A stretch of DNA of 35,710 nucleotides. Source: Octopus bimaculoides. Lineage: Eukaryota. The stretch spans positions 16,221,364 to 16,257,073 of the forward strand of contig NC_069000.1 in NCBI RefSeq assembly GCF_001194135.2. The letters are read 5' to 3'. Positions 9,259 through 34,889 of this stretch are shown here, piece by piece. The translations under genes and the position numbers were made by a program. A model generated the notes under the pieces. It was not told where the DNA came from, made no database searches, and worked only from the letters and a program-made list of their open reading frames with translations. Every line of letters starts with the position of its first letter. The first letter of the stretch is position 1.

Positions 9259-9582
9259 ATGTGAGGATTGAAAACATCTACCCTTCCAAAATTATTAATT
9301 TGGGAGACAATTCTGGAATAATTATAGAATGTCAATATAATGTGAGAAATTTTAAGAACCTCCTTCTCATGAAAAGCTACAGCAAAGTCGTTTTCAAAAT
9401 TGATTATGACAAGGAAAAGGATATCTATGCGAAAACAATCCGGAAGGATGGTTTCGACTGTACTTCGATTAATAGTAATGAAGGGCAGATTATTTGCTGG
9501 AAATTGAATCCCACTTGCGAGGATGCGACAACCTATACATGTAGTTCAGCTACCGAATTTTCAAAACCTAAGACTTTAAAAG
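9259..9582 (+). CDS. Gene 1 Ig-like domain 1 exon (atypical V/I-set, 5 Cys)
   Basis: TACAG|AT acceptor and G|GTCAGT donor; 324 nt, phase 1-1, no stops. IIECQY (B strand) and EDATTYTC (DxxxYxC, F strand). Same length in all three paralogs. Confidence 0.92.
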
Positions 9583-10039
9583 GTCAGTTTTAGTAGTCCA
9601 TATTTTTTTTAAAATTTATTCAGCTCCGTTGACATTAATTTTATTTCTATTGCATGTTAATCACACCAATGCTAATTTTCATAATGTTGTTAAAATATAT
9701 TACATTTCTATTCTTTGTTAAATTAATTTTTATAACACCTTGGTCATGCAAAGTAGGTTTCATCTCAGTCGAAGTGAATTTATAGTATTTGTTAGACATG
9801 TCTCAACAATCCTCCTTTGAACTTTAAACACATCATATCACTTTCATACCAGTTGCTGCAGATTGTCTGCCTTTCGTTACTATGGTGTATTATTACATAC
9901 ATATTATTACTAACATACAGAGTGCATTGGAAACACTTTCTTGAGAGAATCAATAGCTCAGTTTTTACAACACATACTCTCATCCCTGCCTTGCTGTACT
10001 CAATAGCGAGTCCATTCAGAGATCATGAATGTTGGGTAA

Positions 10040-10430
10040 TGATTGAAAGAATATGATCGTGAATAAAAGTCGCCGAAATCAGGTTACTCCGAAGGTTGTA
10101 TGAAGTAACGTTTCTCGACAGGGTGCGTAGTTAACCGATCAGGGAGTCTCTCCAAATATCTCGCAGTGTGAGATCACAGCACCAGTGCTATAGACATATG
10201 ATTAGACTGTCGTAGGAAAGAATCATTAGATGGATTCTTCAAGCCGAGCCAAACGGCAAGAGATCTTGGATTATATAAAAATAATCTTAGTTAGACACGA
10301 TTGGGGATCCAACTGGAAAACCTAATGAGGGATACAATGGGGGAGGTGACTACTGACTCAACCCCCACGGCCCTTCCAGGAATAGTGGACGGAAAAAATA
10401 GGTGGATGGAGTCATGATAACAAAACAGGG
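10040..10430 (+). mobile_element. RTE-like LINE 3' end
   Basis: Reads RIKVAEIRLLRRLYEVTFLDRVRS..IRESL..YRHMIRLS.ERIIRWILQAEPNGKR, typical of RTE C-termini. Confidence 0.65.
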
Positions 10431-10749
10431 TTCTTGACCACTTACCTATGTTGAACGAGTATATACGAGTGTGTCAGTATGTATGTATATAAGTATGTGT
10501 GTATGTAAATGTATGCATGTCTACATGTATATATATTTGTGCGTCTGTGTGTAAATATATATGTATCTGTGTGTATATATATATATATATATATNNNNNN
10601 NNNNNNNNNNNNNNNNNNNNNNNNNNNNNNNNNNNNNNNNNNNNNNNNNNNNNNNNNNNNNNNNNNNNNNNNNNNNNNNNNNNNNNNNNNNTATATACAC
10701 ATTTACTTGACTCCATACAGCCTTAGCACTGCCTTTACTAAAAAGTTAA

Positions 10750-11580
10750 ATAGTTGAACACTTCTAAGCACCAGTTCACAAGGTCCAGTAATAAGAATAG
10801 TTGGTGTGTTGTTAAACGTTTAGTTGTGTATGAAGATTGTAGTTTATATTAGTGAAATCGCCTGATCTGTTATTGTGAGACCCTTTTTTCGAGGATTTAC
10901 ATATTTTGAATTGTTTCCTTTTCAGTAAAATCTTACATAAAGAGTCTGGACCTTCTTACCTCGCCCGTTTACGTGAACAAGTTAGCAATCTTCAGATGTA
11001 CAGCATATATCGGTGCACCCTATGGTATTACTGACTTAGTATGGTTTGAACGAAAGCACAATGACACAAATATACGTGTGAAAAAAGTAAACGTTCAATC
11101 ACATGGCAAGTGTTTAGTTCCAGTAGTGTCAATTTATAATTATACTGTAAAAGAGGGGGACGTTGATGAAACAGAAATCTCGTGTTTTGTGAACGGTGCA
11201 TCAATGACTAAATTACTCATCAACAAAACAGGTAGATGATTTTTTTTATCTTCCTTAACGCTTTAACATATTTTTGTCCTTTCACGTCTTATTCAGCGCT
11301 AATGCGGCTTCTCCTGAAACAATATTTCTGGTTCAATTATACCTTCCAATGGATTTGTACATCCACCCACGGTTACATTGACAAGTATATTTATCCTTGA
11401 TAGTTGAACACTTCTAAGCACCAGTTCACAAGGTCCAGTAATAAGAATAGTTGGTGTGTTGTTAAACGTTTAGTTGTGTATGAAGATTGTAGTTTATATT
11501 AGTGAAATCGCCTGATCTGTTATTGTGAGACCCTTTTTTCGAGGATTTACATATTTTGAATTGTTTCCTTTTCAGTAAAA
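10750..11580 (+). repeat. Exact 181-bp direct repeat (10750-10930 = 11400-11580) bracketing the gene 1 Ig2 exon
   Basis: Base-by-base identical; includes the polypyrimidine tract, AG and first 5 exon bases of the Ig2 acceptor. Confidence 0.95.
10926..11231 (+). CDS. Gene 1 Ig-like domain 2 exon (C2/I-like, 3 Cys)
   Basis: TTTCAG|TA acceptor and G|GTAGAT donor; 306 nt, phase 1-1. Motifs IFRCTAYIG, DLVWFE and EISC; sequons NDT, NYT, NKT. Paralog at 23804-24106. Confidence 0.92.
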
Positions 11581-12335
11581 CCAAGTTTATATATTTGCAT
11601 TTCACGATTCTGGATACATTTAGTTGAGATAAGAAGCTGCTTCCTGTAAGAGCCCTGCATCCACAAATACATTCCATATTCCATGATCTGAATAACATCT
11701 TACTTATGGCGGAAATTGTAGTGGAAAAGTCGCGTACAAGCACGGAAAAGCGAACTTTCTTATAGATACATACACACATATGCACGAGCGCAGTACTCAC
11801 AAACGTACGCATGTACACAAGCACTCATATATGCACATACTCACGTACGTACGCATGTACACATGCACGCATATATGAACGTACTCACGTACGTACTCAC
11901 GCATGCATGCACACGTGTTTAGTTAAAATTGGTTCCAGCAATTTGACAAAAGGAAAATACTTCATAAGAGTGCTTCAGTTTATCTGACTGACATAATTTA
12001 ATACTAGTACATATTTCAGAGTTGAAGAGCTAGTGGTAGGAAAATGTATTGCGTGGCAAAGAAATAAACAAAGACATCTATAAAGAAAAATTTTCAATAC
12101 CAGTATAAAAGATTTATATTTAAAAAGTAACAAAATTTATAGACTGAATTTCTGTTCAAGATCCAATTTTGATCATAGCTTTCGATTGTACCTCTTGTCA
12201 TACATATACACATTTTGCTTTGATTTCACTTTCCAATTGGCTGGGAAAAGAGCTGCTTTGAAAACTAAGATAAAAACTTAAATGTTATATTTCCATATAT
12301 TATTTTGTTTAAAATTTTTTAATTGTTATTTATAG

Positions 12336-12374
12336 AAATTGAAGAGGAACGACGCGGAGAAACAAATACTATAG
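12336..12374 (+). CDS. Gene 1 stalk micro-exon a (E)IEEERRGETNTI
   Basis: TATAG|AA acceptor and G|GTATCT donor; 39 nt, phase 1-1. Same length as 14209-14247 and 25225-25263. Confidence 0.72.
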   Translation, partial: KLKRNDAEKQIL

Positions 12375-12580
12375 GTATCTTTTATCCTTTCACTTTTGCT
12401 TCCTTCAGTTATTATACTGTGGCCTTGCTGGAGCACTGTCATAGATGGTTTTCGTCGAACAAATCGACAGCAGTACTTATTGTATCGTTCTCTATTGCTG
12501 AACTGATAAACTGCTGGCGCGTAAACAAATCAACACTGGTTCTTCAGTGGTGGTCGGGAACACACACTGGGACACACTCA
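12375..12580 (-). mobile_element. Old antisense tRNA-SINE 3' part directly after the micro-exon donor (also 14248-14450 and 25264-25470)
   Basis: actgtggccttgctggagcac..tcgaacaaatcgacagcagtacttatt aligns with the young SINE at 22718-22880. Confidence 0.7.
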
Positions 12581-13896
12581 CAAATACACACATACATACA
12601 TGCACACATAGAGACACAGCTTTATAAGTGAAAATGCCATCGCTGTTGACTTTGCCTTCTATCCTTTCACGACGATGAAATAAGTACCAGTTGAATACTG
12701 GCGGCGATGTAATGATGCGCGCGCGCGCACACACGCACACACAGAGACACACACACACACGTACACACACATACAGAAAAACACACCTACCACACACGCA
12801 CATACATTCACACATGTACACACACATACGCACACATGCACACACACATTCACACATGTACACACGCATACACACACATGCACACACACATTCACACATG
12901 TACACACACATACACACACAGCGACTTTTACTCTATACTGGAATATTTAAAGTCATAAATCCGTTTAATATATACAAGCAGATGTCGACTTCAGTGTAAT
13001 TCGAACTTATAATGTAACCAATACATATTCTGCATCCCGAAGGAGTTTTTATGTGGTAAATAGCAGCTAAATCTCCCTCATACCTATTCTATTGTCATAA
13101 AAAAGGAAGTTACATTGGACTATGAAGTCTTACATATAAAATATGAAGAAAAAACACTAATGAAATATCTCTCTAATTATATCTTTCCATTAAAAAATAT
13201 GTATGATTCTGGTTAATATAATTCAAACCATGTCTGAGACAGGTTGGTTACGGAAGGAAAGTCTTCGATCATAGATTAATGTTATCACGAATGATCTTAA
13301 GATCAACAACATAATTCCACTGGCTCCAGCAATTTGACTAAAAAGAAAAAAATACTTTATGAGAACGCTTCAGTTTATCTGAAATAATTAAATACTAGTT
13401 CACATTTCAGAATTGAGGAGCTAGAAGTAGGAAAATATATTGCGTGGCAAGTAAACACCGAAATAAACAAGAACACCGTCTACAAAGAAAATTTTTCCAA
13501 TACAAGTATTAAAGATTTATATTAAACAAAGTAACAAAAATTATAGATTGAATTTCAGTTCAAGATCCAATTTTGATCATAACTTTCGATTGGACCACTT
13601 CTCATATATATATATATATATATATATANNNNNNNNNNNNNNNNNNNNNNNNNNNNNNNNNNNNNNNNNNNNNNNNNNNNNNNNNNNNNNNNNNNNNNNN
13701 NNNNNNNNNNNNNNNNNNNNNNNNNNNNNNNNNNNNNNNNNNNNNNNNNNNNNNNNNNNNNNNNNNNNNNNNNNNNNNNNNNNNNNNNNNNNNNNNNNNN
13801 NNNNNNNNNNNNNNNNNNCACATTTTGCTTTGATTTCGCATTCTAATTTGGAAAATAAAAGTGCTTTGAAATCTAAGATAAAATCTTAAATAATAT

Positions 13897-14149
13897 AGGA
13901 GAGTATTGTAGTTGTAATTCGCTTGAAGAATTGTGTATTGTTTGTAAAGAATAAAAAGTTTACAATGGTACAACAATGCACTATAAAACAAAAAATGGAC
14001 TATATACCTGTTGTAATTTGGTTGTCTATAGTCCGATGATATTTCGGAATTACAATTCCTTCTTCAGATCTTCTTAGCCGGAGTCTCTGCTATAAATGTT
14101 TTTTGTTTTATAGTGCATTGTTGTACCATTCTAAACTTTTTATTCTTTA
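13897..14149. mobile_element. Penelope-like insertion with a 52-bp inverted repeat and an internal hammerhead motif, flanked by a 12-bp direct repeat
   Basis: cttaaataatat at 13885-13896 and 14150-14161; inverted repeat 13944-13995 / 14099-14150 (51/52 identical). Absent from the paralogous intron before micro-exon a. Confidence 0.65.
14035..14070 (-). ncRNA. Candidate minimal type I hammerhead ribozyme
   Basis: Minus strand GAU-CUGAAGA-A-GGAAU-UGUA-AUUCC-GAAAUAUC-AUC has both core boxes, a 5-bp stem II, a palindromic AUAU stem III and a UC cleavage site. Stem I is only 3 bp. Confidence 0.6.
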
Positions 14150-14208
14150 CTTAAATAATATGTTTCCGTATATCATATTGCATTTGATCTTTTAATTGTT
14201 ATTTCTAG

Positions 14209-14247
14209 GAAGTGAACAGAAAGAACTCGTAGAAATTGATAATGCAG
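14209..14247 (+). CDS. Gene 1 stalk micro-exon b (G)SEQKELVEIDNA
   Basis: TTCTAG|GA acceptor and G|GTATCT donor; 39 nt, phase 1-1. The flanking intron is a duplicate of that around micro-exon a. Confidence 0.75.
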
Positions 14248-14551
14248 GTATCTTTTATACTTTCACTTTCGCTTCTTTCAATTATTGAACTGTGATTTTA
14301 CTGGACCAATGTCATAAATGGTTTTCGTCGAACAAATCGACAGCAGTACTTATTGTATCGTTCTGTATTGACGAACTGATAAGTTGCGGGTACGTAAACA
14401 AACCAACACTGGTTCTCCAGCGGTGGCCGAGAACAAATACTAGGACACATTCACATATACACACACAGACACAAATACGCAAACAGAAACACACACACGC
14501 AGACACAAATACGCACACAGATACACACACACATATATATATGTATATATG

Positions 14552-14606
<55 letters not shown>

Positions 14607-16071
14607 ACAGGACGTCACCAATAGTAAACAACGTGAAATCTCCCCTATCCTTCTCTAATTCTCCTTTTCTTCCCTTTATTTTCTATCTGTCCGTCTCTCT
14701 CTCTCTTTCGCTTTTACTCTCTCTCTCGATTCTCACACGTGACCATCGTCCATCTTTCTTTTTCTCCCGTGACCATCTTTCTTTTGCTCCACAACGTCCT
14801 AAGAACGCCGAGAAAAAATATTTCTCTCAGCGTTCGCTATTTTCCCCTCTTTCTGGTCTAACGACCCTCCTTGTTTTTTTTTTTCGTTCGGTTTCCTTGT
14901 ATGTCTCCACTGTCCTGTTTTTGTTCCCAACTTTGACCCTCCATAAATCCAAAATTTTATTTTGGTATTTATGCGAGCAATTATCGTTCAATGCTCGAAA
15001 CAAGGAGTAGATAAACAGTCGACAACTTGTCCTGTTTTCCATTTTTTCTTCCGTTGTTTACGTATTTAACTCATTTGTTTTCGTATTTTATGTTGTTTAC
15101 TGTNNNNNNNNNNNNNNNNNNNNNNNNNNNNNNNNNNNNNNNNNNNNNNNNNNNNNNNNNNNNNNNNNNNNNNNNNNNNNNNNNNNNNNNNNNNNNNNNN
15201 NNNNNNNNNNNNNNNNNNNNNNNNNNNNNNNNNNNNNNNNNNNNNNNNNNNNNNNNNNNNNNNNNNNNNNNNNNNNNNNNNNNNNNNNNNNNNNNNNNNN
15301 NNNNNNNNNNNNNNNNNNNNNNNNNNNNNNNNNNNNNNNNNNNNNNNNNNNNNNNNNNNNNNNNNNNNNNNNNNNNNNNNNNNNNNNNNNNNNNNNNNNN
15401 NNNNNNNNNNNNNNNNNNNNNNNNNNNNNNNNNNNNNNNNNNNNNNNNNNNNNNNNNNNNNNNNNNNNNNNNNNNNNNNNNNNNNNNNNNNNNNNNNNNN
15501 NNNNNNNNNNNNNNNNNNNNNNNNNNNNNNNNNNNNNNNNNNNNNNNNNNNNNNNNNNNNNNNNNNNNNNNNNNNNNNNNNNNNNNNNNNNNNNNNNNNN
15601 NNNNNNNNNNNNNNNNNNNNNNNNNNNNNNNNNNNNNNNNNNNNNNNNNNNNNNNNNNNNNNNNNNNNNNNNNNNNNNNNNNNNNNNNNNNNNNNNNNNN
15701 NNNNNNNNNNNNNNNNNNNNNNNNNNNNNNNNNNNNNNNNNNNNNNNNNNNNNNNNNNNNNNNNNNNNNNNNNNNNNNNNNNNNNNNNNNNNNNNNNNNN
15801 NNNNNNNNNNNNNNNNNNNNNNNNNNNNNNNNNNNNNNNNNNNNNNNNNNNNNNNNNNNNNNNNNNNNNNNNNNNNNNNNNNNNNNNNNNNNNNNNNNNN
15901 NNNNNNNNNNNNNNNNNNNNNNNNNNNNNNNNNNNNNNNNNNNNNNNNNNNNNNNNNNNNNNNNNNNNNNNNNNNNNNNNNNNNNNNNNNNNNNNNNNNN
16001 NNNNNNNNNNNNNNNNNNNNNNNNNNNNNNNNNNNNNNNNNNNNNNNNNNNNNNNNNNNNNNNNNNNNNNN

Positions 16072-16109
<38 letters not shown>

Positions 16110-16605
16110 TATTACATTATTATCTAAATGGACGCCACGCATCCATTTCCAAGTAAGTTTTCCTATATTAGGTACCTCTGGCAAAAGATGTTGCGTGATT
16201 GGTGAGATTGAAAGTACTGAAGACATACACTAACTTCTTCGACCAAATCCTCACTGACTTTTCAAATTCCAGTTCGAATAGAGCGTCGAGAGGGAAGTGC
16301 TTCCTCTCAGTAAAATCGTTTGACCGTGGATGTATGAAGCAAGACTAGCCCGAGTGAATTTTCCTAAACAAAGCTGGGACCTCTAGTTTCAGAAGTACGA
16401 AGAAGAGAGAAGCACTTACATCTGTATTCCTGGTGAACAGGGGACTCGGAATTATTTGGTTACTGTGGGGTTATTTGGTTGCCCCTGGGTGTCGTTTCCT
16501 TTTTAACTGGTAACTTCGTTTTTCTCATTTGCTTCTGATTGTTTATTTATTGTTGACACGTGTTTATGTAAATCCCTGATATCCTTGATTATTTTTTCTG
16601 AAGCA

Positions 16606-16770
16606 GGCGAGCTGGTAAAATCGTGAGCATTCCATAAAAATGTTTAGCGGCATTTTGTCAGGCTTTACTTTTTGAGTTCAAATGCCACCGAAGTTGACTT
16701 TGCCTCCATTCTTTTGGGGTTCATAAAATAAGTACTAGTTGAATACTTGTATCGATGTAATCGATCTCCC
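16606..16770 (+). mobile_element. Degenerate tRNA-derived SINE (family A)
   Basis: ggcgagctggtaaaatcg..gagttcaaatgccaccgaagttgactttgcc matches the copy at 17922-18151. Confidence 0.8.
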
Positions 16771-16829
16771 ATAATTTCTAGCCTTGTACCAAAATTAGAA
16801 TGAAACATGTTTTGCTTTCTCTGTTACAG

Positions 16830-16909
16830 ATAAATTATGTGATGCAAACATTATTACTAAGATTTTAACATTTGCGACAATACTCTTTGTTATTGGCAAT
16901 CTTCTTTAA
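16830..16909 (+). CDS. Gene 1 terminal exon, GPI-signal-like tail (D)KLCDANIITKILTFATILFVIGNLL*
   Basis: GTTACAG|AT acceptor, in phase with the micro-exon; hydrophobic run reaching the stop codon. Conserved paralog at 27122-27198. Confidence 0.85.
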
Positions 16910-17404
16910 GATTCTCGAAAAATACCACAGCAAAACCAACCTGGTTAGTATTATATGTTTCATTTTCTTTTCTTTGATGTTTTTTAATTCATCGTTAAGG
17001 TCACCATCCTTCTCTAATGTTTAGATTACCATTCATCGAGCAAAAACATTCGAGTACGAAACATCCCCTCTTTTTACGGACGTCGATCATCTTAGTAAGT
17101 TCTTCTTTACTTCATTCAGTTATTCGACAGCGATCATACCTGGCCACGACCTTGAACAGTCGAACAAATAGATCTTACTACATATTTTTAAGTCTGGTAA
17201 TTATTCGATCGGTCACTATAACTGAACCTCTAAGTTATGGGGCAGTGTACAAGCAACGCTGGTTGTGAAGTACTGGCTGGAGTCAAATACATATATATCT
17301 GCATGCATACATACATACATACATACATACATACATACAAAATGTTTTTGCAACAACTTTTAACCACCTAGTGTCGAAGCGCATCCCGTAGAAAACGAAC
17401 CTGT

Positions 17405-18450
17405 CATTGTAGTAACCGACCGAAATACATTGTACAAACCGATCGAAACTTCGAAGAAAACGACCTAGACGTCGTAGAAACTGTCCGACGCATCGTTGAA
17501 ACCGAACGATACATGATAGAAACCGACCCAGACATCATAGAAACCGATAGAGACATCGTAGAAATCGAGCAAGACATAAGACAAACCGACTGAGATTTCG
17601 TAGAAACCGACCAAGATACCAGAGAATCTGTCTCAAACATCGTAGAAACTGACCGACATCATTGAAATACCGGGGCATCGTACAAACCAACCGATACATC
17701 GTAGAAACCTTCCAGACATAGTCAAAACCGAACAAGACATGGTAGGAAGCGACTCATACTTCGTAAAATCCGAATGAGACATCGTGGACGACCAAGGCAT
17801 CATAGAAATCGAACAAGACATCGTGGAAACCGACCCAGACATTGTACAAACCTCACGGACACAGGAAAATCGAACCTAGACATTGTGTAAACCAACCCAG
17901 ACATCGTAGAAACTGACCCAGGCGTCGAACTGGCAGAAACGTTAGTACGCCGGACGAAATGCTTAGTGGTATTTCGTCTGTCTTTACGTTCTGAGTTCGA
18001 ATTCCACCGAGGTCGACTTTGCCGTTCATCCTTTTGGGGTCGATAAATTAAGTACCAATTACGCACTGGGGTCGATGTAATCGATATAATCCGTTTGCCT
18101 GTCCTTGTTTGTCTCCTCTGTGTTTAGCCCCTTGTGGGCAATAAAGAAATAAGAAACTGACCCAGACAACGTGGCATCGGAACCAGACGTCGTAAAAAGC
18201 AACCCAGAAATCTTAGAAAGCTACCCAGACATCGCAAAAATCGACGCAGACATCAAAGAAACCGACAGAGACATTACAGAAACCAACCGAGATATCGTAA
18301 AAAAAAAAAACGACCGAGACATCGTAGAAACAGACGGAGAAATCATAGAAACCGACCAAGACTTCGTTGAAACCGACCGAGTCATCGTAGAAATCCAACC
18401 CGACATCTTAGAATCGTTTCATCACACAGTAGAAACCAACCGAAAATTAC
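17405..18450. repeat. Degenerate 21-bp minisatellite (consensus about gacatcgtagaaaccgaccca)
   Basis: Many imperfect units at about 21-bp spacing on both sides of the SINE at 17922-18151. Confidence 0.9.
17922..18151 (+). mobile_element. Full-length tRNA-derived SINE (family A) with a 14-bp TSD
   Basis: A-box-like aactggcagaa, B-box-like gagttcgaattcc and an A-rich 3' end. agaaactgacccag at 17908-17921 and 18152-18165. Confidence 0.92.
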
Positions 18451-18750
18451 CAACCAATTATAGTAAAAAAGAAAATGTTTTACCGTTTCTCTCTCATTTT
18501 CTTTCTCTCTCACTTTCTCTCTTTCTTTTCCTCTCTATTTCTCCCTTTCTGCCTCTCTCCCTCTCCCTTTTGTTGGCGTCTTTTATACTCTTTCGCTCTA
18601 GCACTTCTTCATCTACCTTTCTCTCTTTCACTTCATTTTACCTTTTCCCTCTCTCTTTCCTCTCCCGCGTTCTTAGTCGCCGTCGTTTTCTTAATCACAA
18701 CACTTCCCCTCATTCTTTATCTTCCTTTCCCCTCTTTACTTCTACGTAGT

Positions 18751-18782
<32 letters not shown>

Positions 18783-19582
18783 TGCGTGNNNNNNNNNNNN
18801 NNNNNNNNNNNNNNNNNNNNNNNNNNNNNNNNNNNNNNNNNNNNNNNNNNNNNNNNNNNNNNNNNNNNNNNNNNNNNNNNNNNNNNNNNNNNNNNNNNNN
18901 NNNNNNNNNNNNNNNNNNNNNNNNNNNNNNNNNNNNNNNNNNNNNNNNNNNNNNNNNNNNNNNNNNNNNNNNNNNNNNNNNNNNNNNNNNNNNNNNNNNN
19001 NNNNNNNNNNNNNNNNNNNNNNNNNNNNNNNNNNNNNNNNNNNNNNNNNNNNNNNNNNNNNNNNNNNNNNNNNNNNNNNNNNNNNNNNNNNNNNNNNNNN
19101 NNNNNNNNNNNNNNNNNNNNNNNNNNNNNNNNNNNNNNNNNNNNNNNNNNNNNNNNNNNNNNNNNNNNNNNNNNNNNNNNNNNNNNNNNNNNNNNNNNNN
19201 NNNNNNNNNNNNNNNNNNNNNNNNNNNNNNNNNNNNNNNNNNNNNNNNNNNNNNNNNNNNNNNNNNNNNNNNNNNNNNNNNNNNNNNNNNNNNNNNNNNN
19301 NNNNNNNNNNNNNNNNNNNNNNNNNNNNNNNNNNNNNNNNNNNNNNNNNNNNNNNNNNNNNNNNNNNNNNNNNNNNNNNNNNNNNNNNNNNNNNNNNNNN
19401 NNNNNNNNNNNNNNNNNNNNNNNNNNNNNNNNNNNNNNNNNNNNNNNNNNNNNNNNNNNNNNNNNNNNNNNNNNNNATATATATATATATATACATGCAT
19501 GTATGTTGTACTTTTACTCTCTGCCTTTGCTGTGTTCGACCATTTCGACTAAACTTCTTTGATTCAGACGTATCTTTTTGTA

Positions 19583-19700
19583 ATGTTTCTGGTTGCTGGA
19601 AGCCTACGATCGTTTCTCGTTCTGCTTTATACTCGTCTTTCAAGATCATCGAAGTTGTTAGCTGTGATGATACTGACAATGGCTTCATACACTTCGACTA
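19583..19700 (+). CDS. Gene 2 leader exon (MFLVAGSLRSFLVLLYTRLSRSSKLLAVMILTMASYTST)
   Basis: Paralog of the signal exon with an A|GTAAGT donor. The homologous ATG is AAG (19652-19654); an in-frame upstream ATG lies at 19583. The start site is uncertain (ATG at 19667 is an alternative). Confidence 0.65.
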
Positions 19701-20021
19701 GTAAGTTCAGATTACGAAAAACGGTATTTTCTTCAGTTATAGCATTAAACCATTTCCTCTTAGATTCCATACTTTTATCGTCGCAAGACGCACTATATAT
19801 CCATACACATACGCGCGCACACACAATCACACATACGTATATACATTCATACAAACATACACCTATATACAAATATATATATAATATATAACTTATATAA
19901 TATATATATATACATATATATACATATGCACACATGTATAATACATCCATATCTATTCTTCTAGCACATTAGCAGTCCACTTAGTGGCCTCCTTTATATA
20001 TACTCATATATATTTTTATAT

Positions 20022-20070
<49 letters not shown>

Positions 20071-20080
20071 NNNNNNNNNN

Positions 20081-20117
<37 letters not shown>

Positions 20118-20134
20118 TATGTGGGTGGCGTGCA

Positions 20135-20173
<39 letters not shown>

Positions 20174-20409
20174 ATGAATTATAACGTTGCTTGAAAGTAT
20201 TGATTCAAACAAGAAACAAAATGTGCTGTCACTATGTATAGAAGAGTAAATATAGAATCATTACAGTTGACACATTTTTTTCCAATACTTCATATTGTTT
20301 TCGTCGAAGAAGCGTCCATTACTCACGAAGAATGTTTTTTGACTTTATATATTAACTGATTTAAGGCCAGTGTTGCGTGACATAGTGTTCTAAAATTGTG
20401 TATACTGAA

Positions 20410-20577
20410 CCCTTACCAACCACATAGCTCCGGGTTCAGTCCCACTGCTTGGCACCTTGGGCAAATGTCTTCTACTATNNNNNNNNNNACCGATGGTGGT
20501 GTGTTTACGTCCCCGAAACTTAACGGTTCAGTATAAAGACCGATAGAATAAGTACTAGGCTTACAAAGAATAAATCT
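20410..20577 (+). mobile_element. Partial tRNA-derived SINE (family B) spanning a gap
   Basis: gggttcagtcccactgcttggcaccttgggc and gaccgatagaataagtactaggc match the reverse complement of 22718-23093. Confidence 0.85.
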
Positions 20578-21685
20578 TGTATTGTCCCGAATACATTGCT
20601 TCTATACCAAATTACATATAATACGCATTCCTGGAACTGATATGTAAACATTAAAGGTTTGAAGGTACGCAGTACTTCTTTATGCAAACACAATATGTAT
20701 GAAGTATATTAAATATTTTTTTTTATATAAGTCACTACCACGTTCTGCTGCGACAGCAGTGCTTCTTACATTATGTTTGTTAAGGTTGTTTCTACAGATA
20801 TCCTATTGAAACTATAGCCAGCATTGATTTTAACTACAATGTTTCGTATCGAGACGTCTCAGATCCCATTGCTTGTTTACATCTGATGTCCCGATACGAA
20901 ACGTCGTAGCAAAAATCTGTGCTGGCTGTAAGTTCTCTAGATTATCTGTAGAAACAACCTTAACAAAAATGATATTTGAGTTACTTGAAGAAATCTACCG
21001 CTCAATTTGTTGTTTTTTTTTTTTGGCGNNNNNNNNNNNNNNNNNNNNNNNNNNNNNNNNNNNNNNNNNNNNNNNNNNNNNNNNNNNNNNNNNNNNNNNN
21101 NNNNNNNNNNNNNNNNNNNNNNNNNNNNNNNNNNNNNNNNNNNNNNNNNNNNNNNNNNNNNNNNNNNNNNNNNNNNNNNNNNNNNNNNNNNNNNNNNNNN
21201 NNNNNNNNNNNNNNNNNNNNNNNNNNNNNNNNNNNNNNNNNNNNNNNNNNNNNNNNNNNNNNNNNNNNNNNNNNNNNNNNNNNNNNNNNNNNNNNNNNNN
21301 NNNNNNNNNNNNNNNNNNNNNNNNNNNNNNNNNNNNNNNNNNNNNNNNNNNNNNNNNNNNNNNNNNNNNNNNNNNNNNNNNNNNNNNNNNAGCGTGTGTG
21401 TATGTATGTGTGTGTGTGTGGCTTGGTTAGTGAGAAAAAAAAGAATAAACAGAAAACGTAGTGTCGTTACCCTATAAATGACGGCAGTATTACACATGTA
21501 ACAATAAATATTAAAAGCTAACTACAAAAAAGTATTTTATTGCTCCTCTTTTTCCTCCTTCTCATCTTTCTTCTTCTTCTTCTTCTTCTTCGTCTTCTTC
21601 TTCTTCTTCCAAGTTCTATAACTTCACTTATATATTTTTGTGACATCTATCGCTGATTTATGTTTTTTTTCTTCTTTCTATATAG

Positions 21686-22009
21686 TTGTTGAGATTGTAG
21701 ATATATCACCTTCTAGTGTCATTAATTTTAGACAAACTACTGCAATAGTTATAACATGTCGATATAATGTGAAAAATCTTAGTGAGTTTCGTCTGACGCA
21801 AAACTTCAGCGAAGTCGTTGTCAAAATTGAATATAACAAGGCTGAAAACGTTTATAAGGAAACAATCCAGAGGAATGGTTTCAACTGTGGTCCTATTCAT
21901 GGTGATAAAGGTGACATTATCTGCTGGAAATTAAATCCCAATTGCGAGGATGCGACATCCTATACATGTAGTTCAGCTAAGGAATCTTCAAAGCCTAAGA
22001 TTTTAAAAG
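21686..22009 (+). CDS. Gene 2 Ig-like domain 1 exon
   Basis: TATAG|TT acceptor and G|GTAAGT donor; 324 nt. VITCRY, GFNCG, IICWKLNPNCEDATSYTC. Confidence 0.92.
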
Positions 22010-25224: not shown

Positions 25225-25263
25225 GAAATGATTGGAATCATTTCGGACAAACAGATAATGCAG
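25225..25263 (+). CDS. Gene 2 stalk micro-exon (G)NDWNHFGQTDNA
   Basis: CTCCAG|GA acceptor and G|GTATTT donor; 39 nt, phase 1-1. Confidence 0.78.
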
Positions 25264-27121: not shown

Positions 27122-27198
27122 ATAAATTGTGTGAAGCAAATATTACTAAACTTTTAGCACTTGCTGCACTCCTGCTTTTCCTTGGCAAACATCGTTAA
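27122..27198 (+). CDS. Gene 2 terminal exon (D)KLCEANITKLLALAALLLFLGKHR*
   Basis: TTGCAG|AT acceptor, in phase. Paralog of 16830-16909; the downstream UTR also aligns. Confidence 0.85.
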
Positions 27199-27904
27199 GG
27201 ATTTCGAGGAAAAAACAAAACAGAACAGAAACAACCTGGTTAGCTTTATATGTTTCATTTTCCTTTCCGTAATTTTGTTATCCTTGTATAAAATATGATT
27301 GATTTTGTTTGTTCTCACTGCCTTCCTTTTTCTTTTAATCTCATCGTTGACGTCATCATCTTTCTTTAATGTTTAGATTAGCATTCACCAAGCAAAAGCA
27401 TTTGATCAATGAGACGAAGATCATCTCAACTGGTTCTCTTTTACTTATTTCATGCAATGGACTGCGGCCATGCTTGGTCACCACCTTGAAATGTCGAACA
27501 AATAAATCGCACTACTTATTTCAAGTCTGGTACTTATTCTATCGCCCACTTTTGCCAAACCGCTATGTTATGGGGACGTATACAAGAAACACGTGTTGTC
27601 ATGCGCTGACTGGAGTCACACACGTACATACATACATACATACATACATACATACATACATACATACATACATGCATGCATGCTCATCTACCTACTTAGC
27701 TACCTACCTACCTACCTACATACATACATACATACATACATACATGCATGCATGCTCATCTACCTACTTAGCTACCTACTTACCCACCTACCTACCTACC
27801 TACCTACCTACCTACCTACCTACCTACATACATACATACATACATACATACATACATGCGTACATACAAACATACATAAAGCTAATGATCTGGGAAAAGG
27901 AGAA

Positions 27905-28075
27905 GGAGGCGAGCTGGTAAAATCGTTAGAACACCGAACAAAAAGCTTAGCAGTATTTCGTCCACCGCCGAGGCTGACTTTGCCTTTCATCCTCTCGGGG
28001 TCGACTAAATAAGCACCAGTTGTGTACTGGCCCCTTCCCCCTAAATTTCAGGTCTTGTACCTATAATAGAACAGA
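27905..28075 (+). mobile_element. Degenerate SINE (family A)
   Basis: ggcgagctggtaaaatcgttag..gactttgcctttcatcctctcggggtcgact. Confidence 0.8.
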
Positions 28076-28084
28076 TCTATGAAA

Positions 28085-28530
28085 AGGAAAATACTGTGAA
28101 AAGGAGACCTATTGAAAAATCTTCAGTTGCTCTATCCCGGTTGCAAGGTTAGGTTTATGCCTGTAATTATCAGGGCAATGGGATATGTAACACACTACCT
28201 AAATTATCACTCTTCAGGAATTAGGCTTCTCAAAATCAGAAAGGAGAAAGCTGATTCAAAGTCTACGAATCCAATCATGTCTAGATATGCAAGAATATGC
28301 ATGAGAAGTCGTACATAAAACAAAACATACAAATCTGCACCTATACATACATGCATACATACATACATACATACATACATACATACATACATACATACAT
28401 ACATACGTACGTACGTACGTACGTACATACATGCATACAAAAATACCCTGTCGTTGATGTAGAGATTCCAAAGAAGGAGTCTTGGATCTAGATTAGAAAC
28501 CGGCTTTTTCTTTATTGGCAAGAAATCTTA
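28085..28530 (+). mobile_element. 3' end of a degenerate non-LTR element, paralogous to 1-300
   Basis: Reads LQLLYPGCKVRFMPVIIRAMGYV..GFSKSERRKLIQ, resembling the C-terminus of restriction-like-endonuclease LINEs. Confidence 0.5.
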
Positions 28531-28563
28531 AAATAATATTGAATAATGACATATATATACATA

Positions 28564-29452
28564 CGTGGTCTGTCCAATAAGTATCGGGGCTGTTGCCATA
28601 GTAACAAAGCTAAACCACGCAGAGTGAAGCTGCTTGATTCACCTTGAACTCCGCTTTGCATGCGCACTAAGTTTTACCGTTCTAGCTCATTTGTCCTGTG
28701 TACAGTAGTGGTTCGAAGAAAGGTGTATAGCGTGTGATCGTCGCATTGCCCATGATAGAGAAAGTTGAGCAGAGAATCTGCATCAAATTTTGCCAAAATC
28801 TTGGCGATACTTGCCCAGAGGCCTATGCAAAGTTTTCAAAAGATTTTCATCGTTCTCGATACAGTCAAGAAGATCTTGTGCAACTGAAACCCGAGTGTCA
28901 TTTTGGTCAGCTGTAAACAGTTCTGGCAAAACCTTGGCAGACACGCGTCTCATACCCAAATCTTCTGTGATAATGAACTGAACTGAACCGTAACTAGTCT
29001 GCACATCCTCTGAAACCCACGGATGGTGATTCGACGATTTCCCCTTACAGCTGCACGCACATCTGCGATGTTTTTCTTAGTTCTGCTAGTTTCGGGTCTC
29101 TCAGATCGTTCGTCAATATCGACATATTTTCGGCCATCTTGGAAACGTCTGAACCACTCGGACACTTGTCTATGGCTCATAAACTCCTCTATATACACTT
29201 TTTTGCAACTTAGCGTAGGCCTCTGAGCATGTATCGCTATTACAACTTTATCTGTCATGGTCAATGCGACGATCACACGCTACACGCCTTCCTTCCAAGC
29301 ACTGCTTTAAACAGCGGAAGTCAGCTAGAACATTAAAACTTATTGTGTATGCACAGCAGAGTTCAAGGTCAATCTTAGCCAAGTGGCTTGACTTTGTGTG
29401 TTGTAGCTTCGTTACTATGGAAACAGTCCGGATAAGTATTGATCAGACCTCG
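28564..29452. mobile_element. Non-autonomous mariner derivative with TA TSD and two inverted 5' ends
   Basis: TA|cgtggtctgtccaataagtatcggggctgttgccatagtaac versus gttactatggaaacagtccggataagtattgatcagacctcg|TA. Minus-strand transposase: VSEWFRRFQDGR..DERSERP..NRRITIR and LGMRRVSAKVLP. Confidence 0.92.
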
Positions 29453-30511
29453 TACATACATATATAGTATCTTTCTACATTGGCAACGGTTTCTTTTTCA
29501 TAGGATATTGTCTGATGAACCCCTTCAGCGAAACTTCCAAGTCACAGTTAAGTCACATTTTCCTGGAAATAAATATTCAACACCACACTATGTATTGAGT
29601 GCTTTCTCTATTTACTGCTCGTTGAATTCTGATATTGAAAACATATATAAATGTGTGTGTGTATGTGTGAACACGTATGTGTACCTATGCTCTCGTACAC
29701 ATGCTTCTAAATAGATATAACAAAACAAATTTTCACCTGGAAGTACATAGAGTCTATCTTGTTTTCCCAACTAGAATCTGCTTTCTACAAGGAAGGATAA
29801 GTATATATAAGAACGACACACACTTTTCTATTGATAGGTGTAGTGTAGCGATACTAGAAAGGTATAGGAAAATGTTTAAATTCTTTGGAAATTTTGGTCT
29901 ATCAATCCCAATGGGAACAGATTGCAGATCAGCTAATTTTCTAGATCTATCAGCCTGAAATACAGGATTATATGCACTTCACCATAATCCAAACGAGACT
30001 CTTAGGAATGTGAACACTTTCTCACACCATCCCTGTGCAATTATAAACACTACTAGCAGAGATACCCGGCGTTGCTTGGGATTAAAATGGCATAGTTGTT
30101 TTTTTAAATATATATAAATTACTTTTATATATAAATTATTGCTTGTTGTGTTCAGAGGAGTCAGCTTCGGCACAGGCAGTTAATGCAGATCTCATCAATA
30201 CCTTATGATAGAGCAGAAGTTGTTGACATGGAAAACGTGTTATGCAAGACTGCTTTACTGAAGCTAATGAAACATGTGAAAACTAAACCATAAACGGAGT
30301 TAGTTGACTCCATTCTTTAATGCTCTTATGTTATGTGTGCGTGGGATGTGTTTGTATATGTATTCATGTATATAATGTGTCTGTATGTAAGTATGCATAT
30401 ATATATATATATATATANNNNNNNNNNNNNNNNNNNNNNNNNNNNNNNNNNNNNNNNNNNNNNNNNNNNNNNNNNNNNNNNNNNNTTACCTGTAATTTGG
30501 GATTTTGTCCC

Positions 30512-30562
<51 letters not shown>

Positions 30563-30834
30563 CATGTATGTATGTATGTATGTATGTATGCACGTATGTA
30601 TGTATGTATGTATGTATGTGTGTATGTATGAATATATATTGTGCTTGTATACCCCAAATAATGCATTGTAGCTCAATTGTTTGAACATGGTGTACGCAAG
30701 ATCGGACGGTCAACAGGAAAGGGGAATGCTGGTAGATGGCTGAGTGTAATGACATTTGTCAGATTCAGCCTCGATAGCTCATTCAGCAACAATAGCTCAT
30801 ACAGATAACTCTGCTCGGTTACCGAATACAACTG

Positions 30835-31100
30835 TGGCAGGAAAGAAGCTGAGAACTTTCAAGAAGCAGTACAAAGCATCCAGTGAAGAGGAACAGTAAC
30901 CTGCTAAGCAGAGTTAGGAAACATTCTGAGGAAGAAACTGATAACTTGTCGCTAAGCACAATGTCATAGAATTCGAAGACAAAGGAGCCAAAGAACGTAC
31001 AGTGTTCATTCCCAACCTGTTCTGCTTCACCAGTAAGTTACTTGGAGATATGTGTAGCAGCAATCCTGAATGCTCACCGGGTCGGTTAGACACCACTTTT
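30835..31100 (+). mobile_element. Hero/NeSL-like non-LTR fragment (paralog of 5100-5400)
   Basis: KLRTFKKQYKASSEEE..LGNILRKKL..ERTVFIPNLFCFTSKLLG across frameshifts. Confidence 0.5.
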
Positions 31101-31594
31101 TCCCAACTGCCTGGGTGACCCTGCGGGAGCCTGGACAAGATATAACCCTAATAAACCTATCACCTCTCCCTTCCCTAACAACTCACTTTGACGTGAATCA
31201 ACTGAGTTGGAGAAAATACCGGGAAGTTAAGGCAGTCTCCCCATTGAGGGGAGTGCCGTATCGAGTGCCGTATTGGAAAATCAATTAGGAAAAATACCAA
31301 CTAACTGTATTAAAAAAAAAAGAAACTGTTTTTACCGTTTCTCTCCCTCTTCCTCTTTCCCTCTGCCTCTATCTTTTTCTCTCTTTCCCATGGAGTTTTT
31401 TTTATACTCTTTCATTCTAACATTTATTTGTCTTCTTATCTCCCTTTCTCACTTTCACTTTTATATTTCTGTCGTCGCTTTCCTCACACGCGTTCTTGGT
31501 GGCCGTTTTTTTCTTAATCACAATACTTCTTACTCATTCGCTTATTATATTGATACTCACTGTCGTCCTTTTCTCTCTTTGTTTGTATATGTGT

Positions 31595-31636
<42 letters not shown>

Positions 31637-31700
31637 TTGTGTGTGTGTGTGTGTGTGTGTTTGTGTGTGTGTGTGCGTGTGTGTGTGTGTNNNNNNNNNN

Positions 31701-31744
<44 letters not shown>

Positions 31745-32096
31745 GTTTTTACTTTGTCAAACTGTTTTCTATGTGTTCTACATGACTTCTCGAAGCACAA
31801 AATAAGTAACAGAGAGAAAGAAAGAAAGAAAGAAAGAAAAAAGAGAGAGAGAAGGGGAGAGAGAGCGAGAGAAGCAAACTATCAGATGAGATAATCTCAG
31901 CTTCAGTCAAACTTCAAGCTTCACTCCTCTCTCATTCACACTTACATATATGGCGCTTTCCTTTCCATTTTTGTTGTGTTTTATCATTTCGACTACACTT
32001 TGTATTAGACACATCTTTTCGTAATATTTATGGTGTCTGGGAGCCGACGATCATTTCTAATTCTTCCTTATACTGGTCTCTCTCTCAAGAACAACG

Positions 32097-32145
32097 ATGT
32101 TGTTAGCTATGATGATACTGATGATGGCTTCTGACACTTTCGCCA
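32097..32145 (+). CDS. Gene 3 signal-peptide exon (MLLAMMILMMASDTFA)
   Basis: ATG at 32097; phase-1 donor A|GTAAGT; the first 12 residues are identical to gene 1. Confidence 0.88.
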
Positions 32146-32308
32146 GTAAGTTTAAACTAAGAAAAATATTATTTTCTTCAGTTTCAACGCTGTATCTGCC
32201 TGTTTTCAATTTAATGCTTTGATCGTCGCAAGACGCACTATATAAGTGCCTACATACATACATACATACATACATACATACAACCATACATACACACCTA
32301 CATACATA

Positions 32309-32359
<51 letters not shown>

Positions 32360-32475
32360 TATACATGTATATCTATATAACTTTTACATCTACATTATAT
32401 AAATATATATAGCACGCATGCATCTACATATATATAATATATATAAATACATATATATTTATATATGTATGTATG

Positions 32476-32708
32476 TTATTTCTTTACTACCCACAGGGGG
32501 CTACACACAGAGGGGACAAACAAGGACAGACAAACGGATTAAGTCGATTACATCGACCCCAGTGCGTAACTGGTACTTATTTAATCGACCTCGAAAGGAT
32601 GAAAGGCAAAGTCGACCTCGGCGGAATTTGAACTCAGAACGTAGCGGCAGACGAAATGCCGCTAAGCATTTCGCCCGGCGCGCTAACGTTTCTACCAGCT
32701 CGCCGCCT
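32476..32708 (-). mobile_element. Full-length SINE (family A)
   Basis: Reverse complement of the 17922-18151 family, ending in ccagctcgccgcc. Confidence 0.92.
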
Positions 32709-33003
32709 TGTATGTATGTATGTATGTATGTATGTATGTAGGTAGGTAGGTAGGTAGGTAGGTAGGTATGTACGTACGTGCGTAGCATGTGTGAGCGTGC
32801 ATGCGTTTTATGTTGTTTGCAGGTATTCAAACAAGAAACAAAATGTGCAGTCACTATTTGTATAAGAGTAAATTTAGAATCATCACAGTTTTTCTAATAG
32901 TTCGTAATGTTTTCGTCGAAGAGGCGTTCATCGCATATCCATTACACATTATATATTATCTGATATTCATCGTTTTAGACCATTGTTGCGTGACATACAT
33001 ACA

Positions 33004-33058
<55 letters not shown>

Positions 33059-33372
33059 TGGCTGCGTCTCATGTTTCCGAGCTTGCAATCCAGTTCATTT
33101 TCCTGGGTGTTTGAAGCGCAGATGGCTCTGTAATCCAAGGGTTGCATGAAACATACGGGGACATTGTGGACAAGGGATAGAAGGAGCTGGTTTGGGAAGG
33201 AGAAAGCGCTGCTTTCTCTCCCGTCTCTTGAGTTCAGCTCTTGCGACTCGGGCTTTCTTGAAGTCCGCAGAACCTATTTTGATGGTGTGTCTCCAGAGGG
33301 GTCTGTTTGCCGAGATATCTTCCCAATGTGCAGGGTCGATGCTGGTGCTTTTCAGGGTTGGCAAGAAACCTT
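33004..33372 (-). mobile_element. 5'-truncated RTE (BovB-like) LINE 3' end with an (ACT)n tail
   Basis: Minus strand IDPAHWEDISANRPLWR..CPQCPRMFHATLGLQSHLRFKH* (C2H2 finger), stop at 33095, short UTR, then an (ACT)n tail at 33004-33058. Confidence 0.85.
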
Positions 33373-33374
33373 GA

Positions 33375-33790
33375 GGTTTCTTCCATACCGACAACATGAC
33401 CCACAAGAATGGAAGGATTTTCATAACCATTATGTGATAACACAGATTTGAAGCTAACCTTACTCGAGTCTATAAACATCCTCCATTCATTAGCCACATG
33501 CACATGTCCTAGTTTTTGCATGGGTGCATTAATATCAGTACAGACACAAGCATTATTTTCTTGCTTGAAAAAAGCAGATAAGCCTTCATGGCGAGAACGG
33601 AAAATGGAAATTTTCGTACCTTGTTGTAGGAGATTCCGTTGTTGTAGTTTGGATGCCAAAACTTCTGCCCTCTCCTTTGACAATGCTAGGTCTCTTGCTA
33701 AATCGTTCAAAACTTCTTGATTAAACTAGCCTGGCTCATTTTTTTCTTAGAATCAACTACGTACTCTTCATCGTGTGACGTGTCAAAATT
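33375..33790 (-). mobile_element. DNA transposase fragment, probably Chapaev-3-like (CMC)
   Basis: LNDLARDLALSKERAEVLASKL..EWRMFIDSSKVSFKSVLSHNG matches a widespread DDE transposase motif set. The superfamily assignment is from memory. Confidence 0.6.
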
Positions 33791-33879
33791 TTCAAGTGAA
33801 GCATGTGAGACAGGGAACTGGGATAGGGTTCTCGAAGTCACCTATGCACACATACACACACATTAACTCTATCTTTTCT

Positions 33880-33918
33880 TTCTCCTCCTCAACTTTGCTC
33901 TTCGTTTTCTCCTTTATT

Positions 33919-33962
<44 letters not shown>

Positions 33963-34500
33963 TTTTTCTCTCTCTCTTCTGCTTCGTCTTCTTTTACTTT
34001 TCCTTTTCATTTTATTTCTTCTCTTCTCATCCTCCTTCCTCCTTTTTCTTTTTTTTCTCTTCTCATTGTTTCTCCCTTTTCTCTTACTCTCCCTTTTCTT
34101 TTTCCTCCTCGTCTTTAGTGTTCGTTTTCTTTTTTTCTTTCTTTCTATTTTCCCCTTCTCCTGCTCTCCTCCCGCTCCCTTCCTCCTCCTCCAGCTCCCC
34201 TCTTCTTCTTCTTCTTCTTCTTCTTCTTCTTCCTGCTCCCCTCTTCTTCTTCTTCTTCTTCTTCTTCTTCTTCTTCTTCTTCCTCCTCTTCCTGCTCCCC
34301 TCTTCTTCTTCTTCCTCTTCCTGCTCCCCTCTTCTTCTTCTTCTTCTTCTTCTTCTTCTTCTTCTTTTTCTTCTTCTTCCTCCTCTTCCTGCTCCCTTCT
34401 TCTTCTTCTTCCTCCTCTTCCTGCTCCCCTCTTCTTCTTCTTCTTCTTCTTCTTCTTCTTCTTCTTCTTCTTCTTCTTCTTCTTCTTCTTCTTCTTCTCA
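33880..34500 (+). repeat. Pyrimidine-rich compound tract: (CTTT)n, (CTT)n and a cctgctcccct minisatellite
   Basis: Direct reading; almost no purines on the + strand. Confidence 0.9.
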
Positions 34501-34565
34501 GTTGTCCTATAAATATTTCTATATTTGTTTTNNNNNNNNNNTTTTTTTTTTTTTTTTGTATACAG

Positions 34566-34889
34566 TTTTTGAGATTGTGCATATGTCACCTCCTGATATT
34601 ATTGATTATGGATACACTTCTACATTAGTAATAATATGTCGGTATAATGTGAAACATTTTGATGAGTTTCTTCTCATGCAAAACGACAACCATGCCGTTC
34701 TCAGACTTAAATATTACTCGCATGAAAATTACTTTTATAAAGATATCCAGCGGGATGGTTTCGACTGCACTCCAATTAAAGGTTATAAAGGGCAGATTAC
34801 CTGTTGGAAATTTAATCCCACATGCAAGGATGCGGCAAACTATACATGTAGGTCGGCTACCGAAACTTCAAAACCGAAGACTTTAAAAG
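34566..34889 (+). CDS. Gene 3 Ig-like domain 1 exon (rest of gene outside the window)
   Basis: TACAG|TT acceptor and G|GTCAGT donor; 324 nt. IICRY, GFDCT, ITCWKFNPTCKDAANYTC. Confidence 0.92.

Follow-up and report, generated by a model that had tools for sequence, protein, structure and literature searches.

Two-Ig surface-protein genes of an octopod-restricted tandem family, with a conserved block in the first Ig domain of an otherwise fast-evolving ectodomain

Why should one half of an immunoglobulin (Ig) domain stay closely similar among tandem gene copies when the other half differs at most of its positions? The question is raised by a 35,710-nucleotide stretch of the Octopus bimaculoides genome (CM046620.1:16221364-16257073; the window), in which self-comparison revealed three tandem paralogues on the + strand, here genes 1 to 3, with a repeat unit of ~12.5 kb. 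The window opens an array of eight or more genes, all in one orientation, at ~16.22-16.34 Mb of CM046620.1, whose members downstream of the window include LOC106880713, LOC106880714, and LOC106880708; a counterpart array was found in Octopus sinensis on CM016876.1. The encoded proteins are small, ~220 to 290 amino acids (aa), with a signal peptide, a V-like first Ig domain (Ig1), a second Ig domain (Ig2), a stalk of 13 to 26 aa, and a hydrophobic C-terminus. The comparison centered on the exons encoding Ig1.

9259..9582, + strand: gene 1 Ig1 exon, V-like, 324 nt, phase 1-1; AG/GT borders, 100% match to A0A0L8FXF0
21686..22009, + strand: gene 2 Ig1 exon, 324 nt, phase 1-1
34566..34889, + strand: gene 3 Ig1 exon, 324 nt, phase 1-1; the remainder of gene 3 lies past the window end

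All three exons were preceded by AG, followed by GT, and composed of 107 whole codons with no stop codon. No run of N fell within any of them; the flagged assembly gaps were all intronic or intergenic, the nearest (34532-34541) lying in a poly-T tract 25 nt upstream of the gene 3 acceptor. Continuity across the gaps is therefore immaterial to the Ig1 comparison. Ungapped alignment gave pairwise identities of 52.3, 48.6, and 52.3%, reproducing the ~49 to 52% of the original prediction, which had been made from the sequence of the window alone. Its fixed length and five cysteines were likewise recovered in all three window genes (Cys24, 67, 79, 86, and 94), as was its count of invariant positions, 11/59 in residues 1-59 (the N half) versus 27/48 in residues 60-107 (the C half; Fisher p = 9e-5). 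Since a max-chi-square scan over all breakpoints was also significant (5000 column permutations, p < 2e-4), the asymmetry does not arise from the choice of cut point. The best breakpoint was located after residue 74, not 59 (invariant positions 16/74 versus 22/33), and the conserved block therefore consists mainly of the predicted strands E, F, and G.

Nucleotide divergence among the copies was 24 to 28%. As a neutral yardstick, the downstream intron and other alignable noncoding blocks were used, the upstream intron being unusable because of a microsatellite. In each gene, this long (TTC)n/(CTT)n tract lies directly 5' of the Ig1 acceptor (~9100-9200, 21560-21612, and ~33950-34530) and yields long spurious open reading frames (ORFs) rich in S/L/F. 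The Ig1 exons contained zero indels, compared with 2 to 5 gap events per 110 to 160 nt of flanking intron. Jukes-Cantor (JC) distances were 0.38 to 0.52 in the N half, 0.18 to 0.24 in the C half, and 0.31 to 0.49 in the intron immediately downstream of Ig1, where 2 to 3 gap events per 110 nt were counted.

Pairwise dN/dS (omega) was estimated by NG86, LWL85, and maximum likelihood (ML), and over the whole exon it was ~1 among the three Ig1 exons. With NG86, dN was 0.39 to 0.56 in the N half and 0.15 to 0.21 in the C half, while the corresponding dS values were 0.25 to 0.40 and 0.22 to 0.40. In each pair, nonsynonymous differences were unequally divided between the halves (Fisher p = 7e-6 to 0.011); for synonymous differences, no contrast between the halves was found in the three pairs (Fisher p = 0.28 to 0.79). 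As synonymous divergence is uniform along the exon and the downstream intron is as diverged as the N half, the contrast lies at the protein level, between a constrained E-F-G block of Ig1 and a fast remainder, and was made by selection on the protein rather than by homogenization of the DNA.

Codon models of the Goldman-Yang type were then fitted by ML, using our own implementation, to nine Ig1 exons from array members and the O. sinensis counterpart array. Not in the array sample were gene 0, which precedes the window, and the stretch 16258561-16277464 with most of gene 4 and the remaining part of gene 3; gene 4 was represented in the DNA examined by its 3' exons only. The single-omega model M0 gave omega = 1.10. 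A two-partition model with omega of 1.40 in the N half and 0.80 in the C half fitted better than a single omega (p = 1e-6), and the constraint of omega = 1 in the N half was rejected (p = 0.014). Among site models, M2a was preferred to M1a (2dlnL = 37.8, p = 6e-9) with omega 3.5 at 30% of sites, and similar results were obtained with M7/M8 (38.4, p = 5e-9) and M8a/M8 (38.4, p = 3e-10). The signal was robust to equal codon frequencies, to an alternative topology, and to restriction to six O. bimaculoides genes alone (p = 1e-6), and the maximum likelihood ratio test (LRT) statistic in 40 null simulations under the fitted M1a was 5.2. When gamma site-rate variation in four classes was allowed, the null model became much better and the Ig1 LRT dropped to 13.5 (p = 0.001), with omega ~4.1 at 17% of sites. 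Positive selection on Ig1 is moderately supported by these data. The diversifying selection that the original prediction had proposed is partly supported: sites with omega >1 were detected in the nine exons with and without rate variation, whereas the window trio alone could not be distinguished from neutrality.

In the M2a analysis, 15 sites in the N half had P(omega>1) > 0.8 (7, 16, 23, 29, 32, 35, 40, 42, 43, 50, 51, 52, 55, 57, and 59), and five such sites were located in the C half (71, 73, 76, 91, and 98). Sites 40, 51, 55, 71, 91, and 98 remained firm under the gamma model, site 76 being weaker (P = 0.71), and the expected number of selected sites under that model was 12.0/60 in the N half and 6.3/49 in the C half. 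The N half is genuinely, if modestly, enriched in such sites. Ig2 was not a conserved scaffold and evolved at least as fast: omega was 1.4 to 1.6 for gene 1 versus gene 2, and eight Ig2 exons gave an M0 omega of 1.49 and M1a/M2a p = 8e-9, or with gamma p = 0.004 and omega ~2 at two thirds of the sites. Both domains thus have statistical support for a class of sites with omega >1, although the strength of that support is model-sensitive. What had been called a hypervariable N half therefore stands as a contrast between halves, but with selected sites in both of them and an Ig2 that is at least as fast, the pattern is better worded as a conserved C-terminal block of Ig1 amid an otherwise fast-evolving ectodomain.

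For placement of these sites, a structure was predicted with AlphaFold2. A run on the three window sequences alone was unusable (predicted local distance difference test [pLDDT] 44.6) and was replaced by one with a 43-sequence family alignment, which gave a pLDDT of 95.7, a predicted template modeling score (pTM) of 0.84, and two all-beta domains of 9 and 7 strands. The Ig1 elements in this AlphaFold2 prediction, by residue, were as follows.

2-7: strand A
19-27: strand B
33-38: strand C
42-50: strand C'
55-61: strand C''
65-67: strand D
74-82: strand E
86-88: short turn/helix
91-96: strand F
about 100-108: strand G

Foldseek returned 389 PDB matches at E <= 1e-3; among the matches listed, all were members of the immunoglobulin superfamily (IgSF), and the best were two-domain ectodomains, namely CD4 D1D2 (best E-value), BTN3A (TM 0.56), VCAM-1, and Fab chains. 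Predicted C' and C'' strands were present between C and D, as in V-set domains. The strand-C Trp of V-set domains was lacking, with F34 and L36 in that strand instead (83% and 80% conserved); the sole Trp is W80 in strand E, beside Cys79. The core-disulfide motif of Ig domains was found in 94 to 100% of the 43 members, with Cys24 in the predicted B strand and D88-A-x-x-Y92-x-C94 in the F strand. On the predicted fold, the family belongs to the IgSF, and Ig1 is V-like. The strongest selected sites would map to the BC, CC', C'C'', DE, and FG loops and to alternate residues of strand C'' (55, 57, and 59), which in the model are expected to face outward.

The relatives of the family were collected by an exhaustive HMMER search of 1.84 billion representative sequences, which yielded 46 relatives (cluster representatives). 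A word-indexed protein search with the 43-sequence alignment had returned seven matches and missed members of the query itself, probably through low-complexity words, and the exhaustive search was used instead. The relatives whose species was looked up were all "uncharacterized" proteins from O. bimaculoides, O. sinensis, O. vulgaris, and Argonauta hians. No Pfam family matched genes 1 to 3, even at E <= 10; among the 43 relatives, a few weak ig, Ig_3, or V-set matches were obtained (best, 2.4e-5), and the family profile gave marginal matches to PDB sequences, exclusively IgSF proteins (E ~0.003). The family has diverged beyond the reach of Pfam. A literature search with the locus names and the topic found no paper on these loci or this family. 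In neighbor-joining (NJ) trees, gene 1 paired with gene 2, gene 3 with an O. sinensis gene (64% aa identity), and gene 7 with another (61%). Residues absolutely conserved in the 43 members clustered in the C half of Ig1 (F65, C67, C79, K81, C86, D88, Y92, C94, and S101). In the O. sinensis ortholog of gene 3, Phe replaces the strand-F Cys94 (positions 9893-10213 of the fetched CM016876.1 stretch); the five cysteines are therefore not fixed family-wide. The C-termini also varied, some distant members having a true transmembrane (TM) segment with a cytoplasmic tail and others a hydrophobic C-terminus only.

The array, then, holds tandem two-Ig surface-protein genes of a family restricted to octopods, with intact, length-conserved exons. 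These behave, with caveats, as working genes that have undergone birth-and-death duplication while length, splice sites, and cysteines were conserved. The reading that probably accounts for the data is that of an octopod-only two-Ig array with two selective regimes within Ig1, encoding a membrane-tethered recognition molecule under diversifying selection. With caveats, the data show two regimes acting on one Ig fold. Residues 60-107 of Ig1, most strongly 75-107 in strands E, F, and G, are kept by purifying selection with omega ~0.5 to 0.8; this block carries four of the five cysteines and the motif GF.C...CWK.NP.C.DA..Y.C...SSKPK.LK, and its role may lie in folding, in disulfide bonding, or with a partner that the members share. 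Residues 1-59, spanning strands A to C'', and the whole of Ig2 change at or above the neutral rate, with omega 1.2 to 1.5 and a minority of sites at ~3.5 to 4. The fast surface on both domains may contact a ligand and diversify among paralogues and species, and the protein may be a membrane-tethered recognition receptor, for which immune, gamete, or cell-cell recognition are all possible roles.

Several results weigh against this reading. No positive selection was detected in the N half of the window trio (pN/pS 0.92 to 1.54, Fisher P(pN>pS) = 0.16 to 0.73), nor by M1a/M2a on the trio (LRT 3.2, p = 0.20). In the first 60 nt of gene 2 versus gene 3, 13 of the 17 differences did fall at codon positions 1-2, as the original prediction had counted, and no synonymous bias was seen; there was also no excess (binomial P(>=13 | 17, 2/3) = 0.28), as neutrality predicts. 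Approximately two thirds of the site-model signal was lost once the rate was allowed to vary among sites, and the codon-model code was checked by null simulation only, on 8 to 9 sequences that are mostly paralogues. The ortholog pair of gene 3 and O. sinensis Os6 gave an omega below 1 (0.67 to 0.76), with the contrast between halves present, and the pair of gene 7 and Os12 gave an omega of 1.3 with no such contrast (dN 0.23 versus 0.21). Column entropy across the 43 members differed weakly between the halves of Ig1 (2.34 versus 2.00, p = 0.14; Ig2, 2.29), and the clustering of selected sites on one face was derived solely from strand periodicity, not from coordinates.

The main rival is relaxed constraint alone. 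The N half of Ig1, with its edge strands C' and C'' and its loops, would drift neutrally together with Ig2 after duplication, and only the disulfide core of Ig1 would be constrained; the family would then be merely a young, loosely constrained, lineage-specific one. The trio results, with pairwise pN/pS of 0.9 to 1.5 never significantly above 1, the omega of the gene 3/Os6 pair, the drop of the LRT from 37.8 to 13.5, and the similarity of N-half divergence to that of the flanking intron are all consistent with this explanation. It does not readily account for the class with omega ~4 in 17% of sites, which was preferred despite rate variation (Ig1, p = 0.001; Ig2, p = 0.004), for the rejection of omega = 1 in the N half, or for null simulations that never exceeded an LRT of 5.2. 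Moreover, the N half has invariant sites, so a mean omega of about 1 or more implies omega >1 elsewhere within it. Relaxed constraint as the sole cause is accordingly considered unlikely.

Gene conversion had been offered in the original prediction as another cause, repeatedly homogenizing the 3' half of Ig1 among array members while the 5' half escaped. The genes share one orientation in their tandem array and are 12 to 13 kb apart, and nucleotide divergence of the C half is about half that of the N half, as conversion would produce. However, synonymous divergence is alike in the two halves (ML synonymous-rate ratio C/N 0.76, p = 0.22, in addition to the Fisher tests above), and the intron that directly follows the exon matches other noncoding DNA in its divergence. 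The pairwise homoplasy index (PHI) was negative with nine sequences (p = 0.94) and with six (p = 0.10), as was a Sawyer-type run test (global p >= 0.6), and NJ trees of the N and C halves gave the same sister pairs, cross-species ortholog pairs included. Homogenization of this kind is very improbable. That the copies are pseudogenes or misassembled duplicates, and the pattern without biological meaning, is scarcely credible: although the region is gap-rich (13 runs of N), a 181-bp exact repeat adjoins a gap, and overall omega is ~1, the three exons are intact, equal in length, free of stop codons, bordered by canonical splice sites, and indel-free between introns that carry indels, full gene structures exist and have RefSeq models and isoforms, AlphaFold gave a confident model, and copies 24 to 28% divergent are not assembly duplicates.

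The window matched GCA_001194135.2 with 0 mismatches over the 26,128 nt overlaid; its G+C content is 37%, and microsatellites are abundant. Mapping of proteins onto it gave 5 to 6 exons per gene, encoding the signal peptide, Ig1, Ig2, one or two stalk segments of 39 nt, and the hydrophobic C-terminus. Gene 1 corresponds to A0A0L8FXF0 ("Ig-like domain-containing protein," 100% match), and the Ig1 and Ig2 translation of gene 2 matched XP_014786277.1 ("uncharacterized protein LOC106880715 isoform X1," O. bimaculoides) at 100% identity. In addition to the Ig1 exons, the following were located.

6435..6483, + strand: gene 1, coding part of exon 1, with signal peptide MLLAMMILMMASYSSA and 1 base of a split codon (tblastn of A0A0L8FXF0, GT donor)
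10926..11231, + strand: gene 1 Ig2 exon, 306 nt
12336..12374, + strand: gene 1 stalk exon A, 39 nt
14209..14247, + strand: gene 1 stalk exon B, 39 nt, within a segmental duplicate of the stalk region
16830..16909, + strand: gene 1 terminal coding exon, DKLCDANIITKILTFATILFVIGNLL plus stop (from tblastn and from the isoform XP_014786281.1 sequence)
19583..19700, + strand: gene 2 exon 1 coding part, annotated start; 100% match to XP_014786277.1
23804..24106, + strand: gene 2 Ig2 exon, 303 nt
25225..25263, + strand: gene 2 stalk exon, 39 nt, single
27122..27198, + strand: gene 2 last coding exon, DKLCEANITKLLALAALLLFLGKHR plus stop
32097..32145, + strand: gene 3 exon 1 coding part, MLLAMMILMMASDTFA

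The hydrophobic C-terminus of gene 1 is a putative membrane tether, either a glycosylphosphatidylinositol (GPI) signal or a TM segment with a short tail; the tails ending in DKLCEANITKLLALAALLLFLGKHR and ANIITKILTFATILFVIGNLL fit a GPI signal or a TM segment with a 3-residue tail alike. Genes 1 and 2 each have five cysteines in Ig1 and three in Ig2, eight in all, so that within either domain at least one is left without a partner; a disulfide may join the two domains or link two molecules as a dimer. The products of genes 1 and 2 are treated by RefSeq as isoforms X1, X2, X3, and X6 of one locus, LOC106880715 (window 6435-27198). This merging prompted consideration of a cluster with shared constant exons, of the protocadherin or UGT1 type, which was rejected, as each gene has its own Ig2, stalk, and C-terminal exons. 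In the gene 1 isoform XP_014786281.1, Ig2 is skipped.

The two stalk exons of gene 1 derive from a segmental duplication (11930-12618 versus 13321-14493), gene 2 having one. A 181-bp direct repeat, 100% identical, lies on both sides of the gene 1 Ig2 exon (10750-10930 and 11400-11580). Both copies include the acceptor ...TTTTCAG and the first exon bases; the repeat follows closely on the assembly gap 10595-10691 and is probably an assembly artefact and not biology. In gene 2, the ATG that opens the signal peptide of genes 1 and 3 reads AAG. The annotated upstream ATG gives a 39-residue leader, within which an ATG at 19667 lines up with the gene 1 and gene 3 signal peptides, and in gene 1 a stop codon closes the frame matching the upstream start of gene 2. 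Further along the array, gene 5 (LOC106880713) has an in-frame TAA exactly at the Ig2 splice donor site of the other genes (fetched stretch 18672-18974) and would give an anchorless product. For gene 6 (LOC106880714), no Ig2 exon was found in the fetched stretch (10001-20958), and its model joins Ig1 straight to the hydrophobic tail. Between the genes, transposon debris gave weak matches under Pfam cut-offs, to DUF4371 (hAT-type) at 3657-4031 (+) and to Mos1 HTH_48 at 28953-29276 (-). A degenerate tandem repeat with coding-like "DRDIVETD" periodicity occupies 17389-18437 (ORF 18171-18749), with related blocks at 5635-6003 and 31273-31633; this repeat and a low-complexity element lie upstream of exon 1 in every unit.

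Vertebrate IgSF receptor families also form tandem arrays with fast-evolving ectodomains, and the octopus array is alike in this respect. Among V-then-C ectodomains (BTN3A, CD4 D1D2, SIRP, and CD2/SLAM type), the predicted octopus Ig1 plus Ig2 superposed best on BTN3A and CD4 D1D2, and the predicted C' and C'' strands of Ig1 resemble those of a V domain. Sequence identity to vertebrate IgSF structures was only 10 to 18%, with genes 1 to 3 unmatched in Pfam. Ig1 differs from vertebrate V domains in having five cysteines, three of them extra, and no strand-C Trp, and most octopus members, unlike vertebrate IgSF receptors, lack a cytoplasmic signaling tail and have only a hydrophobic C-terminus. 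On the predicted structures, the likeness is that of the shared Ig fold.

Among invertebrates, the FREPs of Biomphalaria and the VCBPs of amphioxus and Ciona carry one or two Ig domains at the N-terminus, are secreted or displayed on the surface, and are encoded by diversified multigene families and thought to act in immune recognition. The octopus proteins have neither a fibrinogen nor a chitin-binding domain but a stalk and hydrophobic tail instead, and in this comparison the family shows no evidence of somatic diversification. For want of these two domains, the family is neither a FREP nor a VCBP; the full proteins, of 275 to 286 aa, end in the stalk and hydrophobic tail with no Pfam domain. 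The Alr complex of Hydractinia consists of tandem surface-protein genes with few Ig-like domains, the membrane-distal part being most variable, and its variability is allelic within the species. The octopus array resembles it in outline only, the likeness being one of organization, with no sequence relationship found and none looked for, and the octopus figures represent divergence between paralogues and between species rather than alleles. In organization and evolutionary mode, the family resembles both the vertebrate tandem IgSF receptors and the invertebrate variable Ig families.

The lineage-specific expansions known in cephalopods are those of protocadherins, zinc fingers, G protein-coupled receptors, and the like; to our knowledge, no diversified Ig-type recognition family has been described in these animals. 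A bolder proposal, which we hold only tentatively, is that the genes encode previously undescribed, octopod-specific diversified Ig recognition receptors, with a surface driven by an arms race or by self or partner discrimination and perhaps highly polymorphic within species. If so, they would correspond in cephalopods to families such as FREPs, VCBPs, NITRs, or the Alr genes of Hydractinia, and pathogen binding, allorecognition, or gamete recognition would be the driving context. The family is also a clear example of a fast-evolving protein in which one part of a domain is conserved, here strands E to G of Ig1 with the three extra cysteines, and this points to a shared structural or partner-binding role for that block. 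The family is octopod-restricted and tandem, and its surface proteins combine a V-like with a C-like domain and have an omega of 1 or more across almost all of the ectodomain; it is therefore a concrete candidate for immune or other recognition in animals for which few such molecules are known.

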